NCBI RefSeq assembly: GCF_037042905.1 | Contig: NC_087245.1 | Location: 29,202,001 to 29,266,000, forward strand | Length of the DNA stretch: 64,000 nucleotides | Direction: 5' to 3' | Origin: Lytechinus pictus | Taxonomy: Eukaryota | Shown: piece by piece, positions 720 through 10,000 of the stretch | Numbering within the stretch: position 1 is the stretch's first letter | How the letters are laid out: the number at the start of each line of letters is the position of its first letter | The notes under the pieces: model-generated | Database searches by the model: none | Seen by the model: only the letters and a program-made list of their open reading frames with translations | What the model was told of the DNA's origin: nothing | Position numbers and translations under genes: made by a program

Positions 720-3700
720 GACACAAAAAGTGCCGAAAGACAGACTATTCTTCCACCAATTGATGCGTAAGTATATATCACTAATTATTTTATAAATATG
801 CGATATGATATTATTTGTTTTAAATGGAAATTACAATGAAAAAAATGGCAGTCATGATAGGGATATCTTGATTTTAGATATTTATTATTTCTTCTCGTGA
901 TAACGATTCCACGAACACGAAAGTAGAATCTTCCACCAAGGAATATGTTTATAACTTGAATTAGATTATAATTTAATTATATTTTTATAATTTCAAAGTT
1001 TAATTAAATATATAGATTATTTTATAATCGTTATGAAAGTTATGCCTCGATTTATCTGGAATTCTAGGCTTTTGTCTATTAAAGCGTAAAATATCTGCTT
1101 TTGTCGCTTTACGCTCTAATGATCGATCCAAATGCGCTACCGCAGCACTTTAAAATTTTCATTTAAGAGAAAAATAAGTTGAAGGAAATAAAATTCTTAT
1201 TCTCTGACTTTTTAGAAACTTATCTGTAAAACGTAATTTCAATATAAATGCACAGTTTGAAGAAGAACATGTGGGCTTTGTGTTACAAAGATTGTCGATA
1301 GACTATGCGATATATTTTGAAATCTCAACATAGCGGGGTTTTTTTTGAGAGAGAGAAATGTTTCGAGAAATGTAATGTTCCGTATAGAGCCAGTTCCTGA
1401 CTTCCAGAGTATTTCATTTCAGACATGGCGGGAGAATGCCTCCTATCTTAATTTAAAACAAGCTAAGGTGATTGTGTTAGAGGCTGGTTCATACTTAACA
1501 ATCCTGAAATACATGTATATACAATTAGCAGGGGGTGAACACTGCAGTATCCCTTTCTTGTAAATGTTTGATATTTGATGACGTGTTTTGTAACGTTTTA
1601 AAAACATCGCATATAATGTACATGTGCAGGGAATGAACATGATACTGTCAATGTAAACATACATTTTGTTATTTCCATTTGAATACTCTCATGTTTGACA
1701 TTTGATAATGTGTTTATAAACATCTCTGGAAAAATAAGACGTATAGACATAAGTTATGAAAGCCGCCCGAAGAAAACTACACGGAACATTCATGGATGAT
1801 TGAAGAGTTGCTGAAAATAAATTTTCGTTTGTCACGGGAGCTGGTCATTCATTTTGTTCAATTGCCTTTGACAAAACAGGTGCATAGTTTTGCTGAAACA
1901 TCGTATTTCACTGCCGCTTTGTGGAATTACCAATTTAATTTAATTTTCAATTATTCAAAGATATGGAAGAAATCGATTTACCAGGCGGCGATGCCTGACT
2001 GTCGGCAGGTGGTAGAGTTTTTAGTCCTGCATAAGAAAACAAGATTCGATATACATGTTTGTTTTCATCAGTGAATGACGAACACCAAGAGGCGTTAGAG
2101 GGTTCATTAATTAATTTCCATGACAACAAGATTCTGGGGAGAACTGAGAGTTTATGTTCTAGAAGAACAGGATTGTTATAGCTTTGAAATTTTGGAAACG
2201 AACATACTGACGAGGCAATGCGAGTCCTGCTCGTGACGTTACTTATTGTATACATTTCATGTTAAAAAAAACACTGGATGAAAACGATTGCTTGGAGGAA
2301 TGATATGATTAATTTGAATTCATGGATTAGAACGATTTCTATCTTGCGAATAAGCGAATTATAACATCTTCCCCGTTAGCATAAGTACTTTTCAATCTTG
2401 GAGAAATTTAAATTTGGAATGTGATCTTCTTTCGGCATTTCACCGCTGTGATGAGATTTGTTGATGGCAATTTGATCAAGAATGGAATATTTGGCTATTA
2501 CAACAAAGAAAGGGAGTTACAGGACAGGAGACAGGAAAATGACAGAGAATTCACCAGAAGATATTAATAAACCAAGGAATGTCATTCGGCTTGAGCGGTA
2601 TTGCTGCCGCGCATTTGCTGCCTTCATAAAGAGAAGGGAATATTGGCAAAATCGCAAGGAACTTAAGCGTTGGGAAAGGTATATTCATACTTTTAGCAAT
2701 TTTGGACGAAAACGACTAAGAATATGACCCCCATTTACTCCTCCTAATCAAGGAGTTTAAACCCCTTACTCAATCGAGCTGCACATTTCCTACGTAGTAA
2801 TTATGTGTAAAATGCCTACGTTTTCTCAATCTCATTAAAGACGGTTTTTATATTTTTACGTTGTAATGTGTGCTGTGCAAATTTGTTCCGAACCCTTTTT
2901 AAGTGAGTGGCATTTATAATCCTTATACACTTCTCACAGCCCTTCTGTCAATTTATATGACAAAACGACAAATATGATTTTTGTCCGCCCATCCAAGCCT
3001 TTTGTTTTGTGGCAAACTATGATAGGATGGGTAAAACGCCTTAGCAGCTAAAGGGGATGACGATAAAAATATATATATCTAAAACGCATAAAACTTGACA
3101 AAGGTGTGGTTGATGAGGACACCCCTCCCCCTTAGATCCGCCACTAATGTATTGATAGTAAACTTTCAATTAACTAACAGAAACTGTCTCCGTTTCATGT
3201 CGTAGACTATACAACAGCCTCTTCGCCAACCTATCTGCCAGCTACCCTTCACATCTCTTGCGGAAACGATGGGAGTCGTCTGTGGCGGCGTCGTCGATGG
3301 GTGCGACATCGGTCTCATCAGACCTGAACAGCACCAGCTACCTCCCTTTTATCGGTACCGCTCGACTTCATCCCAAGGAGCTCACCCCTACAGTTCGGCG
3401 GGATGACAGTTCACAGCCTCCTAGTTTCTGCTACGGTTGCACGGCCGAGCTTGGAAATCAACCAGATATCAAAGTAAGAACTAAATTAATTTCTCTTCGT
3501 TTTATTTGCTCCATGACGAGGCATTTGTGTTATAAACAGGAAAAGGAGAGAAGTGCAATTTTTTTTAGTAGGAAGTATGGATGTATTGCAATACTCATAT
3601 AAAGTTGACACTTTTTACTTATTTTGTGGAAATTAGGATAAAATTTTACCCGAACAATTAAAACGGTGTATAAAATGAGAACTTCTAACTAAACTTGGCA

Positions 3701-4009
3701 GATAGAATAGTGACCTAGGGTCTGTTTACGGATTTCAATGTAACAGAAGTTGTGCATGTTCAATTGTCGGCAATCTCGACTTGATTCCTTCGTAATACTA
3801 CACAATTCCTTTTATTTCATATCCAAAGAATTTAAGAATTCATTCGAGTCGAGTTGATATCATTTTTTTCTCCATAATCACAACATAAATTTGTGTAAAG
3901 TATGTGCACCTTCAAAGAGGCTAGTATAACGACTCAACTCAACAGTATTTCATCATTGTTTACAAGCATATACGTTAGAAATGATACGTTGAAAAGCCTT
4001 AGATATATT

Positions 4010-4053
<44 letters not shown>

Positions 4054-7000
4054 ACTCAATGCCGTCTATCATTCTTCTTCCAATCCCCAGGCACCTCTGT
4101 TCTTTCTTGACAACCCAGGTGATAGCACGGATGATGACCGATTAGGCATCGAGCATGCGCAGTTGGTTCCACAAAATGGCCCCGCCCACCAACACGTTGC
4201 TACCACCCGAGTCTGCTACGGCTGCTCTCTCAGCAAACTACCACAGTAAGTTATGTTAAGTACATTATTTTATATTGATTTAGTTTCGAGCAAATTTCAA
4301 CCTGTAGTATTATACACGTATTATGTTTAAAGGGATCATTTTCGAAGTAAAGTTCTTATAAATATATTTGTAGTATCTTACGTTCTAAAGTTTTGACTGG
4401 ACTAGATTAATAATTATTCTAGGAATAAGTCATTTGCATATTCATATAATAGTCAGAAACGACATTGTTCATGATAAAATGCGACTAGACAATGATGGTC
4501 TCTCTAGTTGATCCTTTCATCTTGTCATCATTTTTTGCTCAATCTCTTATATTCTTGTATACAGTTTATATATATTTAGTTAGGATGTTTTAAAGTTCCA
4601 TCTACTTAATGAGGTGGCGAGACACTCTATCTTAAGTCGACTTATTAACTTTATAAGTTAAATGTATGGCGACATTTTTTCTCTCACTTTGTCGACTTCT
4701 AAAAAGTGACATGATACTATATTGACAATGTATCTTTCGAATGCTCAGACGACTTTCAATAAAGTTACCTGTCGTCATTGTGACATTTCTTGCTTATTCG
4801 ACTTTGTAAGGTAACTTAATATGTCGCCACTAACTTAGGGTTGATAAGTAGACACAAATCTAACTAGTTCACTTCATAATTTGTCTTGTTTTATCCATAT
4901 ATGTTTGATTTTCTGTATTTGTATTTTAGTGTTTTCTTGTTTACTTTCCTTCCATACTTAAACTGTTTTTTGTTTTTTTCTGGTATCTTTGTCTGGTCGA
5001 TTTTACTTTTCAGCTTGATTTAATTAACTTTGTGTATTCTTATCATCATTCTGTTTTAGGTCCAGTTCAAATCTACTCGACTTTTCTCATTCTTTATATT
5101 TGATTTGTTTTGAATTTCCATTTTCTTTGTTTTACACCTTTTTTATTTTTTTATTCTAGGTCTCTTTCAGCTTGATTCAATTAACTTTGTGTATTCTTAT
5201 TATCATTCTGTTTTAGGTCTAGTTCAAATCTACTCGACTTTTCTCCTTCTTTATATTTTGATTTGTTATGAATATCCATTTTCTTTGTTTTACACTTTTT
5301 TTTATTCTAGGTCTCTTTTCTACCATGACTAACCATCTATCTTTATTTCACCAGCTCAGGAAGATCAAGCTGAAGGCCCTCAAGACCTCTTTTCACCAGG
5401 ACAATTACAGATTTTATTCCCTTAATCGCATTATACCCACAGGCCTCCAACTTCATTGCACTCCCGGTCTCGGTACGCTCACACCTGAACTTCGCAAACG
5501 ATGGAACCAGACCTTACATGGAGCTTCAGTTCGATTAATTAACATCCTCTCTGAACAGTGTATTGCTTCTCTTGATTCTTTTTCAGCTGACATCAGTAGC
5601 CTGGAAGACGAACTACGTTCTTGCTGTACCCAAACCCAATGGCTTCAGTATAATGATGAAATTGAATCTGATCTCTCTAAACACAGGTCTCTCCTCACTG
5701 AACGCAGGAACAAGAAAATAGGCAACCTCACAAAGAAGCGACAACGGTCAAACAGATTTAGACGACATACCAACAACAATGATGTATCCCCCCATTTGGT
5801 TGTTAATCTCTCATCCTCCCCTCTCTCCCAAGCAGAAACCTCTCTTCTCTCTAAAGGTCTCAAGTTTTGCCCCACGCCACCAGAAGTTGAACAGATAGCT
5901 CTCAGCCAAGACCTCTCTACATTCTATCGCAGGATACGTCTCAAAGAGTTCTTTTTAGATGCACCCCCTTCTGATCCCGAGCCCTTCTACAAGAAAAGCA
6001 CATGGATTCCACCTAAGAATAGAGTTCCTTCCCTTGAAACTTACATCCAAGCTGTCTCATCCCAAGTTCGCTCCACAGATACCCTCGACACCAGAGCACA
6101 TGACAACCTTCCTCGAGAAGAACGCCAGGCTCTCTCATCACTCAAAAACAGGTCCGACATCATCATCAAGCCTGCAGACAAAGGATCAGCCGTCGTTGTT
6201 ATGGACCGCCAGCAGTACATCGATGAAGCCATGAAACATCTCAATAATCGATCTCACTATGCACTCCTCGATTCTGACCCTACTTGTAATTTCTCCCTAC
6301 AGATCCAATCGACACTGAATGACATGAAAGAACGCGAGTATCTCTCTGAGAAGGCCCACAAATTTCTCTCCCCTACTAATGCTAAACCTGCCCGCTTCTA
6401 TCTCCTCCCGAAGATCCACAAACCTGGCAACCCCGGTCGACCCATCCTCTCAGGAAATGGTTCCTCAACAGAGAACATCTCCCTTTTTGTTGATTACCAC
6501 ATTAAGCCCCTTGTCTCACGTGCACCCTCTTACATCCACGACACTCCAGACTTTCTCAGGAAACTAAATGACATCAAGGACCAGATACCCGAGACTGCGA
6601 TCATCGGCACTTTCGATGTTTCTTCACTGTACACCAGCATTCCCCACGACGAAGGTATCCAAGCATCATGTGAAGCCTTGGCCGCCAGTGGCCATTCCAG
6701 TCCCCCCATATCCGATATCAAATCTCTGATGTCTCATGTACTAACAAAAAACAACTTCACATTCATGGGCAAGCACTACCTACAGATATTCGGTACAGCA
6801 ATGGGCACCCGGATGGCTCCTTCATTCGCCTGTCTCTTCATGACGAAGCTGGAACAGCAGATGTTAGATTCAGCCCCCTGTCGCCCATGGATTTGGTGGC
6901 GTTACATAGACGACATTTTCTTCATCTGGACCAGGGATGAAGACAGCCTCCATACATTCATTGACCACATCAATTCCTTCCACAGGACCATCCAATTCAC

Positions 7001-10000
7001 TTCTGATTTCTCCCAACAGGAAACCCACTTCCTTGATGTTACAGTCCAGAAAAAGTCTAATGGTATCACCACTACCCTATACTCTAAACCCACAGATACC
7101 CACCAGTACCTCCACTCATCCAGCTGCCACCCCCGTCACTGCAAAACCGGCATCGCTTACAGTCAAGCTCTCAGACTTCGCCGTATCTGCTCCGAGGACC
7201 CTGATTTTTCCTTCCATGCCAGGAATCTGCAGAAACATCTCTGTGCTAGGGGCCACGGGGCCAGGGCAGTCCAACTGGCAATTAACAAAGTTCGTTCTCT
7301 CCCCAGATCTGAAGTTCTCAAACCAAAAAGTGACAAGGAGACCACCGACAGAATACCGCTTGTGACCACCTTCCATCCCAATCTACCCCCTCTCCGCAAA
7401 ATCCTGTTTGATAACCACCACATTTTACACACTTCTGATCGTCTCCAACAGGCCGTTCCCGATACTCCCCTTCTAGCATACCGACGCCCACCGAATCTCA
7501 GGGACCTCATTGTTCGTGCTGAAGTGCCCTCCCTCACTAACCATTCTTCTCCCATACAGCATGGCACCTTCAAATGCACCAGCAACAGGTGCATCATATG
7601 TGAAATACACCTTCACGAGGGCGATACTTTCACCAGCAACTCTACCAGCCTGTCTCACCAAATCAAGGGCAACATCACATGCACTACCACTAATGTTGTA
7701 TATCTCATCACTTGCAGAGTTTGTAGGGTACAATACATAGGGGAAACCAAGACCACACTCAAGAAACGATTCTACGGGCACAGATCCACCGTCAACACAG
7801 CAAAGCTGGACACTCCAGTTGGCCGCCATTTTAACCTCCCCAACCACTCCATCACTGACATGATGCTACAGGGCATCGAATCTTTAGGTACCCGTCCTGA
7901 CTCAGTCCGTACTAGCAGGGAGAAGCTCTGGATGAGACGACTTCGCACCACCCAACCTCATGGCCTGAACATCCAAGAGGGGAACGACTGATTTTTCTTT
8001 CCTATCCACTTTCAATTTATATATACATATAATTTTTCCCCTCAGCTCTTTTGAATAGTTACATTATAGTTTCTTACTCTACTTTCCTCCCATATCTCAT
8101 ACAAGCTCAGCTCCAATTTTTCCTTCCTTATTCAGGCGATATAATAATTATTATATATATATATATATATTTGTTTTTTCTCCACTCACCTCTTTTAGAT
8201 TTACCACATTTGCTTATTTACATGTATACTATGGTTTCTTCATAATACACCCCCTCTCTTCTATATTTGCTTTTACCTTTTTAGGCAATTTGCTTCCTCT
8301 TTTTCACATATACAGATTTTTTTCTTTCCTACTATATAGTCTTATGTTTTTTCCCGTCACACCTAGCGGATTACCATATCAGTTACACCATATGTGTATA
8401 TATTTATATATTTTTTCATATACATTTCTTTTTTGGATATATTTATATACATATCACTTATAGATACATATTTACACTTACCTTCTTCTCTTAGTTTGTT
8501 TAATGCTTTATCATATATACTTATATGTCTTTTGCACATTATCAGTTGTTCCCCATTCTTTTTCTTCCTTTTTTTCCCCCCACTCCTATGCACCAGTTTA
8601 TTAAGCCTTTCTTTGTAACCTGTTTGACCCACCTCTCACTAATTCTCTAGTTATTCATCCCTCTATCACTGTTTTGTTCCAGATCCTGTTTGATGTTGCC
8701 TGCCTCATTATCTTAATCCCTCTTGGCCTTACTTACACTAACTTCCCTTTGTGTCTGCCTACTCCTTTTCTTTCATCCCCTTCACTAACCTGATTGGTCT
8801 TCTCTACTCACTAATGCCCCTTTTGTCTCCTTGTTTCTAGTGTTGCTGTAGCTTGTTTGTGGTCTATATTATGGTTGTTCCACTTTATATGTTTGTCATT
8901 TTGCCTCCGACGAAGATTCTGCTAGGATCGAAAGCTTAGGCCCCCTTTTTTACTTTATAGTTCACTTCATGTGTGTGTTTTTTTAAATATATTTTCAGTG
9001 TGCATGTGACGAAGCCACGTCGAGTAGGTGGTGGATACACCATGGTACGCCAAGCTGTCGAGCCTTACAGCGGAGACAAACACAAAAATGGCGGTTCGCC
9101 CCCACCCTCAACATATATATCAGGTATTACGTCATACTCGCATAAATCAATACCTTTCATTTCCATACAATCATGGCTGAAGTATGAGTTCATTTTGTAT
9201 ACAATTACTCAACCTCTTGAATGTACATTCTTGGGTATGTCGTTTCACATATCATTCCATTCACTTAACACGTAAACCTACTTCAGAATGTATCATTTCT
9301 AGTATCTATACCATAGCTAGCTTTTTATTAGATTAAAACTACACATATCATTTCATGCCTATGTTTCTATCCATGTTATGTTGTACACATCGAGATTCTC
9401 TTCCATGAATAAACATAGTTATTCCAACTCTTCAATGTTCAAACGAATCACATTACGTTCTCCTCCAGGAAAAAAAATCATCGCTTCCTCTGTTACTCAG
9501 TTCTACATCTGACTTCTCTTTTCCCATTATATACATATTTTTCACTCAATATTGTTTCCAGAAAAGAATTCTCCCGTGCTCTCTTATTTCTCCGCGTCCA
9601 TTATCATCTCAACATCCCATCCATTCTATTTTCTCCTCTCACCTATGCCATAAATCATATCTAAACCCCATCTAAAGATGACATGTCTTCAGACGATGAG
9701 GACATCGAAAGCCACTTCGATGCCGTGATCGACGAAGAAGAAAGGGGGATTTTAGATTACATCAATGTCGCAAAGCTGGATGAGCCAACGCTCCCGCTCC
9801 CGTCAATCCCGCGGGAGAAACCACTCCCGATCCCACTTTGTATCATGGAAAAGATCAAAGCTAAAGATGTAAAGGCAGTCAGCTTGCATGAACGTAAGTA
9901 TTTCAACATGTTCAAGTGGCTGCAATGAACGGGGAAATTGTAGGCTCAAAGTGCCAAATCATTAAAGCACAGATGGGGCATTCAAAAAAAGATTGATCTT

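Follow-up and report, generated by a model that had tools for sequence, protein, structure and literature searches.

The 64,000-nucleotide stretch of Lytechinus pictus DNA analysed here (the whole of it is called the window; NC_087245.1, positions 29,202,001-29,266,000, on contig C1 of the assembly searched) carries a Penelope-like element (PLE) of 4,080 bp at 4878-8957. This copy is very probably a single, very recent insertion of a currently active family of canonical Neptune-like PLEs, truncated at its 5' end. An initial annotation of the window had stressed a perfect 13-bp target-site duplication (TSD) and the absence of an obvious pair of pseudo long terminal repeats (pLTRs), and had proposed a unit-length insertion. 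Comparison with other genomic copies shows instead that a clean TSD and an absent pLTR are ordinary outcomes of 5'-truncated target-primed reverse transcription (TPRT) in this family.

Insert boundaries and the genomic family

With one mismatch allowed, the 13-mer TAGTTCACTTCAT occurs at exactly two sites in the window, and the element occupies the 4,080 bp between them:

4865-4877, + strand: upstream copy of the TSD, TAGTTCACTTCAT (exact 13-mer search; left flank single-copy in the assembly)
4878-8957, + strand: PLE copy of 4,080 bp, 5'-truncated (full-length matches of 97-100% identity elsewhere in the genome)
8958-8970, + strand: downstream copy of the TSD (exact 13-mer search; right flank single-copy in the assembly)

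The assembly searched comprises 811.7 Mb in 368 contigs. Genomic copies align over 4878-8957, so that the two 13-mers adjoin the limits of family homology, and none of the genome alignments of other copies continues into the flanks of the window locus. The flanks (4250-4877 and 8958-9600) match only their own locus in the assembly, where no alternative haplotig was found, apart from four weak matches (70-80%) to a short unrelated repeat within the left flank. A chance origin of the 13-mer is ruled out by its exact 13-bp identity at both boundaries of family homology, and the duplication flanking 4878-8957 is a genuine TSD. Its length must nevertheless be given as a range. The first TA of the downstream 13-mer may be element sequence (the family 3' end reads ...CTTTATAA), and the T at 4877 is the same base as the last base of a linker that precedes the element in other copies; the true duplication is therefore 10-13 bp. 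The perfect TSD of the initial annotation is thus confirmed at the limits of family homology and between unique flanks. Its observation that no clear 5' copy of the 3' end exists is borne out as well, since a direct-repeat search of 4000-10000 found no copy of the element's 3' end in the 5' region.

Searched against the genome, the 4,080-bp insert returned 1,145 first-look candidate fragments, and 3'-end queries returned about 1,740 candidates, the separate searches ranging from 1,145 to 1,749. Identity is 91-100% among all scored copies and 95-100% among copies of at least about 3 kb. The copy survey that the initial annotation had proposed (number, identity, termini and TSDs) therefore does not describe a family whose members are all old and divergent. 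Thirty loci, cited below by L numbers, were fetched for detailed comparison. The 5' ends of these copies are dispersed, lying at element positions -40, -25, -18, 8, 98, 111, 131, 318, 356, 530 and onward to 1163 (position 1 being 4878 of the window), whereas their 3' ends coincide. Scattered 5' ends combined with coincident 3' ends are the pattern of TPRT with 5' truncation.

The upstream sequence of longer copies identifies what the window copy lacks. Among the 17 copies that reach position 1-131, 11 (L003, L007-L014, L016 and L017) carry a pLTR and a linker ahead of position 1. The linker is a conserved 111-bp segment, TAATTTACTCC...CCTCCTTATCT, directly upstream of position 1 (e.g., L014:1389-1500 and L003:1391-1500). 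Upstream of the linker lies a partial element 3' end of 50 to about 1,200 bp that terminates at 4079-4080, and this is a classical PLE pLTR derived from a partial tandem. Three copies without a pLTR start within the linker, 40 (L002), 18 (L004) and 25 bp (L005) upstream of position 1. Another classical PLE arrangement occurs at L029, where an inverted 5'-truncated copy stands head-to-head with another truncated copy (1-1502 versus 1501-4635). The presence of linker and pLTR upstream of position 1 in most full-length copies means that the window copy is truncated at its 5' end. It is an ordinary 5'-truncated product, short by about 170 bp or more, and not a special unit-length form; the term "unit-length" fails because the family unit extends upstream by the linker and pLTR in those 11 of 17 near-full-length copies. 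In other copies the family unit runs past position 1, yet its homology does not enter the flanks of this locus.

The family 3' ends fall into two sharp classes. The first, at element positions 4079-4083 (...GACTTT[A/C]TAA), is found at 19 of 27 loci and in the window copy. The second lies 61-66 bp beyond, within the linker, at the other eight loci (L002, L004, L008, L010, L014, L019, L024 and L025) and at 26 of 40 scored 3' ends. The additional 61-66 bp are the first part of the 111-bp linker and end sharply; they are a PLE "tail" of about twice the described length, which is 30-40 bp (PMC8557442). The window copy's own 3' end, at 8940-8957, is unlike that of all other copies (CCCCCTTTTTTACTTTA versus CCCCTTTTTGACTTT[A/C]), with an extra C, an extra T and a G>T change in a copy whose remainder is nearly free of private changes. 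Errors as reverse transcription began may account for these differences.

TSDs of about 6-15 bp flank at least 12 other copies, L028 among them. Lengths are as follows:

L005, 9 bp; L006, 7 bp; L007, 10 bp; L011, 11 bp; L014, 6-8 bp; L015, 10 bp
L017, about 15 bp (one mismatch); L022, 9 bp; L023, 7 bp; L024, about 12 bp; L030, 11 bp

The first bases of the element share 1-5 nt of microhomology with the target in L005, L015, L023, L028 and L030. Variable spacing of first- and second-strand cleavage is known to give variable TSDs in PLEs (PMC8557442), and rotifer PLEs are reported to have TSDs 8-10 bp long and 5' junctions formed through microhomology (PMC3846280). The premise that PLEs often lack clean TSDs was accordingly overstated, as short variable TSDs are the rule according to both studies and surround at least 12 other copies here. 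The window 13-mer (10-13 bp) is one draw from a variable stagger of about 6-15 bp, so that this single copy is not a privileged, clean record of GIY-YIG cleavage geometry, as had been suggested. The family also appears to have relatives elsewhere. Runs X10-X20, from the organisms labelled C and D, contain 19-32% of the sampled 31-mers of the stretch, and a closely related PLE family (about 95% identical) is probably present in related species.

Coding region, clade and age

The element has one open reading frame (ORF) between untranslated regions (UTRs), and the uninterrupted frame with reverse transcriptase (RT) and GIY-YIG endonuclease (EN) that the initial annotation reported is upheld by matches to both domains:

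4878-5324, + strand: retained part of the 5' UTR, holding a 157-bp tandem duplication (repeat search; alignments of copies)
5325-7991, + strand: single ORF, 888 aa plus stop (ORF scan; comparison of intact copies)
6177-6185, + strand: DKG motif of PLE RT (ADKGSA, aa 284-289; motif defined in PMC8557442)
6540-6989, + strand: RT core, Pfam RVT_1, aa 406-555 (E = 1.3e-8, over the gathering score)
7575-7601, + strand: Cys-rich linker C-x4-C-x2-C in the RT-EN interval (CTSNRCIIC, aa 751-759; CX2-5CxxC type)
7695-7970, + strand: C-terminal GIY-YIG EN (Pfam E = 0.0014, below the gathering score, together with motifs)
7992-8957, + strand: 3' UTR, 966 bp, with an internal (TA)n tract at about 8140-8185 (sequence reading; repeat search)

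The frame measures 907 aa from the ATG at 5268 and 888 aa from the ATG at 5325, with the stop at 7989-7991 in either case. The upstream in-frame ATG lies in the second unit of the 5' UTR tandem duplication and is not conserved; five other intact copies lack it and begin only at MTNHLSLF, which makes the ATG at 5325 the conserved start. The tandem duplication itself (5008-5149 and 5165-5306) is the only long direct repeat in 4000-10000. Its units are about 90% identical in a gapped alignment and are found in every copy that reaches the region; L019 apparently has one additional partial unit. Within the protein, the YIDD of the RT is encoded at 6903-6914. The EN occupies aa 791-882 of 888, with a core, VVYLITCRVCRVQYIGET (7695-7748, aa 791-808), that places two Cys between GIY and YIG and is followed by GHRS, GRHF and a region with H, R, E and N. 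The nearest ESM-Atlas clusters combine HTH_animal, DUF8422, RVT_1 and GIY-YIG, the usual animal PLE architecture.

The element is a canonical EN-containing PLE with a C-terminal EN, and its Neptune-like character is assigned from published diagnostic motifs, as defined by Craig et al. 2021 (PMC8557442) and Arkhipova et al. 2013 (PMC3846280). A Cys-rich CX2-5CxxC linker is diagnostic of Neptune and Nematis and is absent from Penelope/Poseidon (PMC8557442); the linker at 7575-7601 therefore excludes the latter group. Naiad and Chlamys, which have an N-terminal EN and DKA, are excluded by the C-terminal EN and DKG. The Hydra clade, with no CCHH in the EN, DKT and a CxCX5C linker, is excluded by the two Cys between GIY and YIG, by DKG and by CX4CX2C. 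By motif comparison, Neptune or Nematis remain as the likely clade. The initial label of "Neptune/Naiad-type" is thus retained in its Neptune half (DKG, CX4CX2C and CC in the GIY-YIG domain) and dropped in its Naiad half, given the C-terminal EN and DKG.

Comparison with known PLEs is consistent with this placement. Like members of the Neptune clade (Arkhipova 2006; PMC8557442), the element encodes in one ORF an RT and, C-terminal to it, a GIY-YIG EN, and it has DKG, a CX2-5CxxC linker and an EN of CCHH type in which two Cys lie between GIY and YIG. The family as a whole shares with Neptune the partial-tandem pLTRs, 5' truncation, variable TSDs, inverted copies (L029) and a 3' tail, and its pLTR region holds a putative counterpart, described below, of the minimal hammerhead. 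It differs in its longer tail (61-66 bp versus 30-40 bp) and in a hammerhead-like core whose position 4 is C rather than U in every copy, and the window copy differs further in having no pLTR. Penelope of Drosophila virilis and Poseidon resemble the family in retrotransposon type, TPRT-like insertion, variable TSDs, pLTR architecture and the more-than-unit copies thought necessary for activity; they lack the Cys-rich linker between RT and EN that is present here. Naiads have the same type of EN (CCHH and CX2-5CxxC), reportedly near-indistinguishable from that of Neptune. In contrast to the C-terminal EN, DKG and hammerhead-like motif of the present element, however, Naiads have an N-terminal EN, a CxC motif, DKA, IFD and no canonical hammerhead (PMC8557442).

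Age was judged from pairwise distances and counts of private substitutions rather than from a consensus or ancestral sequence. When 17 copies were aligned, L002 proved nearest to the window copy, at a difference of 0.1%, and the window copy has one private substitution in 4,080 bp, the lowest count of the 17 copies (the others have 3-90). The ORF is open in 12 of the 21 copies that contain the region. Values of pN/pS lie between 0.15 and 0.5 in 10 of 11 comparisons of intact copies, and the eleventh (L026) has no nonsynonymous change; these ratios indicate purifying selection on the ORF of the propagating lineage.

Four read runs were placed on 4400-9400; the intronic flanks of the element are uncovered in all four, and none contains a join that bypasses 4878-8970. 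Run X1 yields a 3,026-nt contig over 5146-8139 with three differences from the window. Another X1 contig, of 1,322 nt, matches 8999-9123 exactly with its positions 1159-1283 and differs from the window to either side of them; because it matches only across this spliced exon, run X1 is RNA. Two 2026 raw RNA runs cover the element body thinly and its last ~400 bp heavily, with reads from both directions. The family is transcribed. Near-identical copies, the single private substitution, intact ORFs, pN/pS below 1 and the RNA contig all speak for a young copy from an active family; the initial annotation had proposed a young, possibly active insertion.

The window copy keeps the whole ORF and lacks the 111-bp linker, the upstream pLTR and the hammerhead-like motif of the pLTR. 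It is coding-competent but probably not self-sufficient as a source, since the ~170 nt that it lacks include that 5' motif and the presumed start site, with the promoter presumably among the missing parts.

Alternative explanations and proposed mechanism

Three other explanations of the 5' end have to be weighed. It is very unlikely that an internal promoter drives a unit-length genomic RNA whose true start is position 1 (4878) and that the copy is a complete, pLTR-less form. The copy does start before the ORF, with 447 bp of 5' UTR retained, and L002, L004 and L005 likewise have no pLTR. However, no other sampled copy starts at position 1, as pLTR-less starts fall at -40, -25, -18, +8, +98 and +111, and the sole cluster of 5' ends lies about 170 bp upstream, at element 4014-4032 of the preceding pLTR (9 of about 19). 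The loss of an inserted pLTR through deletion or recombination is barely credible: recombination-derived solo or rearranged pLTRs have been reported for PLEs (PMC3846280), but after a later deletion the new 5' end would not directly adjoin a perfect 13-bp duplication, and with only one private substitution there has been little time for secondary events. An assembly artefact, in the form of a collapsed tandem junction or a misplaced repeat copy, is most improbable. Tandem and inverted PLE structures are known to trouble assemblies (PMC8557442), and neither junction is spanned by a read in the four runs; against this, the TSD is perfect, both flanks are unique, and the copy's own 3'-end variants (CCCCCTTTTTTAC versus the family's CCCCTTTTTGAC) argue for a real individual copy.

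Some points weigh against the preferred reading, a recent 5'-truncated insertion of an active Neptune-like family. The empty site was not seen, and insertion at this exact site is deduced from the TSD and the family boundaries. The Pfam GIY-YIG match (aa 791-823) scores 19.3 bits, under the gathering cut-off of 22.6, and the motifs are also needed to identify the EN. The motifs that indicate Neptune are compatible with Nematis as well. Finally, the transcription start of the family is a deduced position, and the lack of self-sufficiency is accordingly no more than probable.

The 5'-truncated insertion probably arose by TPRT, in the following proposed order. At the left edge of TAGTTCACTTCAT, the GIY-YIG EN would nick the bottom strand. 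The freed 3'-OH would then prime cDNA at the usual short 3' end of the RNA (...CTTTA/TAA), where 2 nt (TA) may have overlapped. Either reverse transcription or 5' joining would halt about 170 nt before the family's full 5' end, a cut in the top strand would follow 10-13 nt along, and filling in the stagger would produce the duplication. Insertions of 5'-truncated LINEs are similar in that their 5' truncation varies, staggered nicks give them TSDs and their 5' junctions show microhomology, and the window copy on its own looks much like one of them. The differences lie in the RT lineage, in the EN (GIY-YIG rather than APE or REL), in the lack of a poly(A) tail, and in the tandem and inverted pLTRs and tails that this family also makes.

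RNA ends, the hammerhead-like motif and the host intron

The last 55 bp of the element contain a candidate ribozyme, and the family's clustered 5' ends lie just upstream of the corresponding site in the pLTR:

8903-8941, + strand: minimal hammerhead-like motif (own descriptor; conservation in copies)

The motif consists of a helix I GCCU/AGGC, a core CCGACGA, a bulged A, a 5-bp helix II with G10.1-C11.1, GAA and a palindrome AGCU, in a type-I architecture with a predicted cut after 8937. The descriptor, which permitted C or U at core position 4, hit this site alone when applied to the element, and 2,000 shuffles gave no hit. Among 29 copies that keep the motif, five have a single private change (three in the core or helix II, two in the loop). 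Core position 4 is C in all 29, whereas the canonical core has U. The traits of PLE minimal hammerhead ribozymes (min-HHRs) include the bulged base, the G10.1-C11.1 pair and a palindromic helix III (PMC4209133). Rfam scans of 4000-10000 and of the complete tandem junction L014:900-1700 found nothing with E values allowed up to 10; Rfam models do not capture minimal PLE hammerheads. On reading the sequence after 8941 and the linker by eye, no convincing stem-loop resembling a histone-mRNA 3' signal was seen. On these features, 8903-8941 is a putative min-HHR with a variant core.

Of about 19 5' ends that fall in the linker or the final 119 bp of the pLTR, 9 lie at element 4014-4032, and 6 at 4019-4023. 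The cluster (8891-8909 in window-equivalent positions) is just upstream of the hammerhead-like motif and comprises L003, L008, L011, L016 and five further genomic places. RNA reads have many loose ends at 8895-8905, with heterogeneous sequence upstream. Clustered DNA ends and loose RNA ends together suggest either that the RNA has a discrete 5' end or that there is a preferred point of switching. We infer that the cluster may mark the 5' end of the family's RNA; a complete copy would then comprise a pLTR of about 60 bp, the 111-bp linker and the 4,080-bp body.

A more specific scheme is tentative and somewhat doubtful. The genomic RNA might have discrete, terminally redundant ends, starting about 3-7 nt upstream of the pLTR hammerhead (element ~4019-4023) and ending about 20 nt past the predicted cut (4079-4083) or 61-66 nt further on. 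The pLTRs of ~50-67 bp and the cluster of pLTR starts would then mark the 5' end of the RNA, and the ribozyme would define neither end of the DNA. The window copy would be dead-on-arrival, although still transcribable from its host intron.

That intron belongs to a host gene in which the element is inserted in sense orientation, close to an exon that lies outside the element:

8999-9123, + strand: host exon (acceptor AG at 8997-8998, donor GT at 9124-9125)

The 3' end of the element (8957) is 41 nt upstream of this expressed exon, and the distance falls to 28 nt for the insertion point, taken as the 13-mer's downstream edge. Between element and exon, the second TSD copy, the pyrimidine tract and the AG are all intact. 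Within the 13-mer, TTCAC is a plausible branch site at -34 as judged from its sequence, and the duplication may have preserved the splicing signals before exon 8999. If the insertion segregates in the population, it would provide a natural test of its effect on splicing.

Taken alone, the window copy is an ordinary young retrotransposon copy of modest interest. The family to which it belongs is very young and high in copy number. Its dozens of near-identical insertions, with their sharp junctions, their two discrete 3' ends and the clustering at the 5' end, are well suited to study of the poorly understood integration cycle of PLEs, including the origin of pLTRs and tails and the role of the hammerhead.

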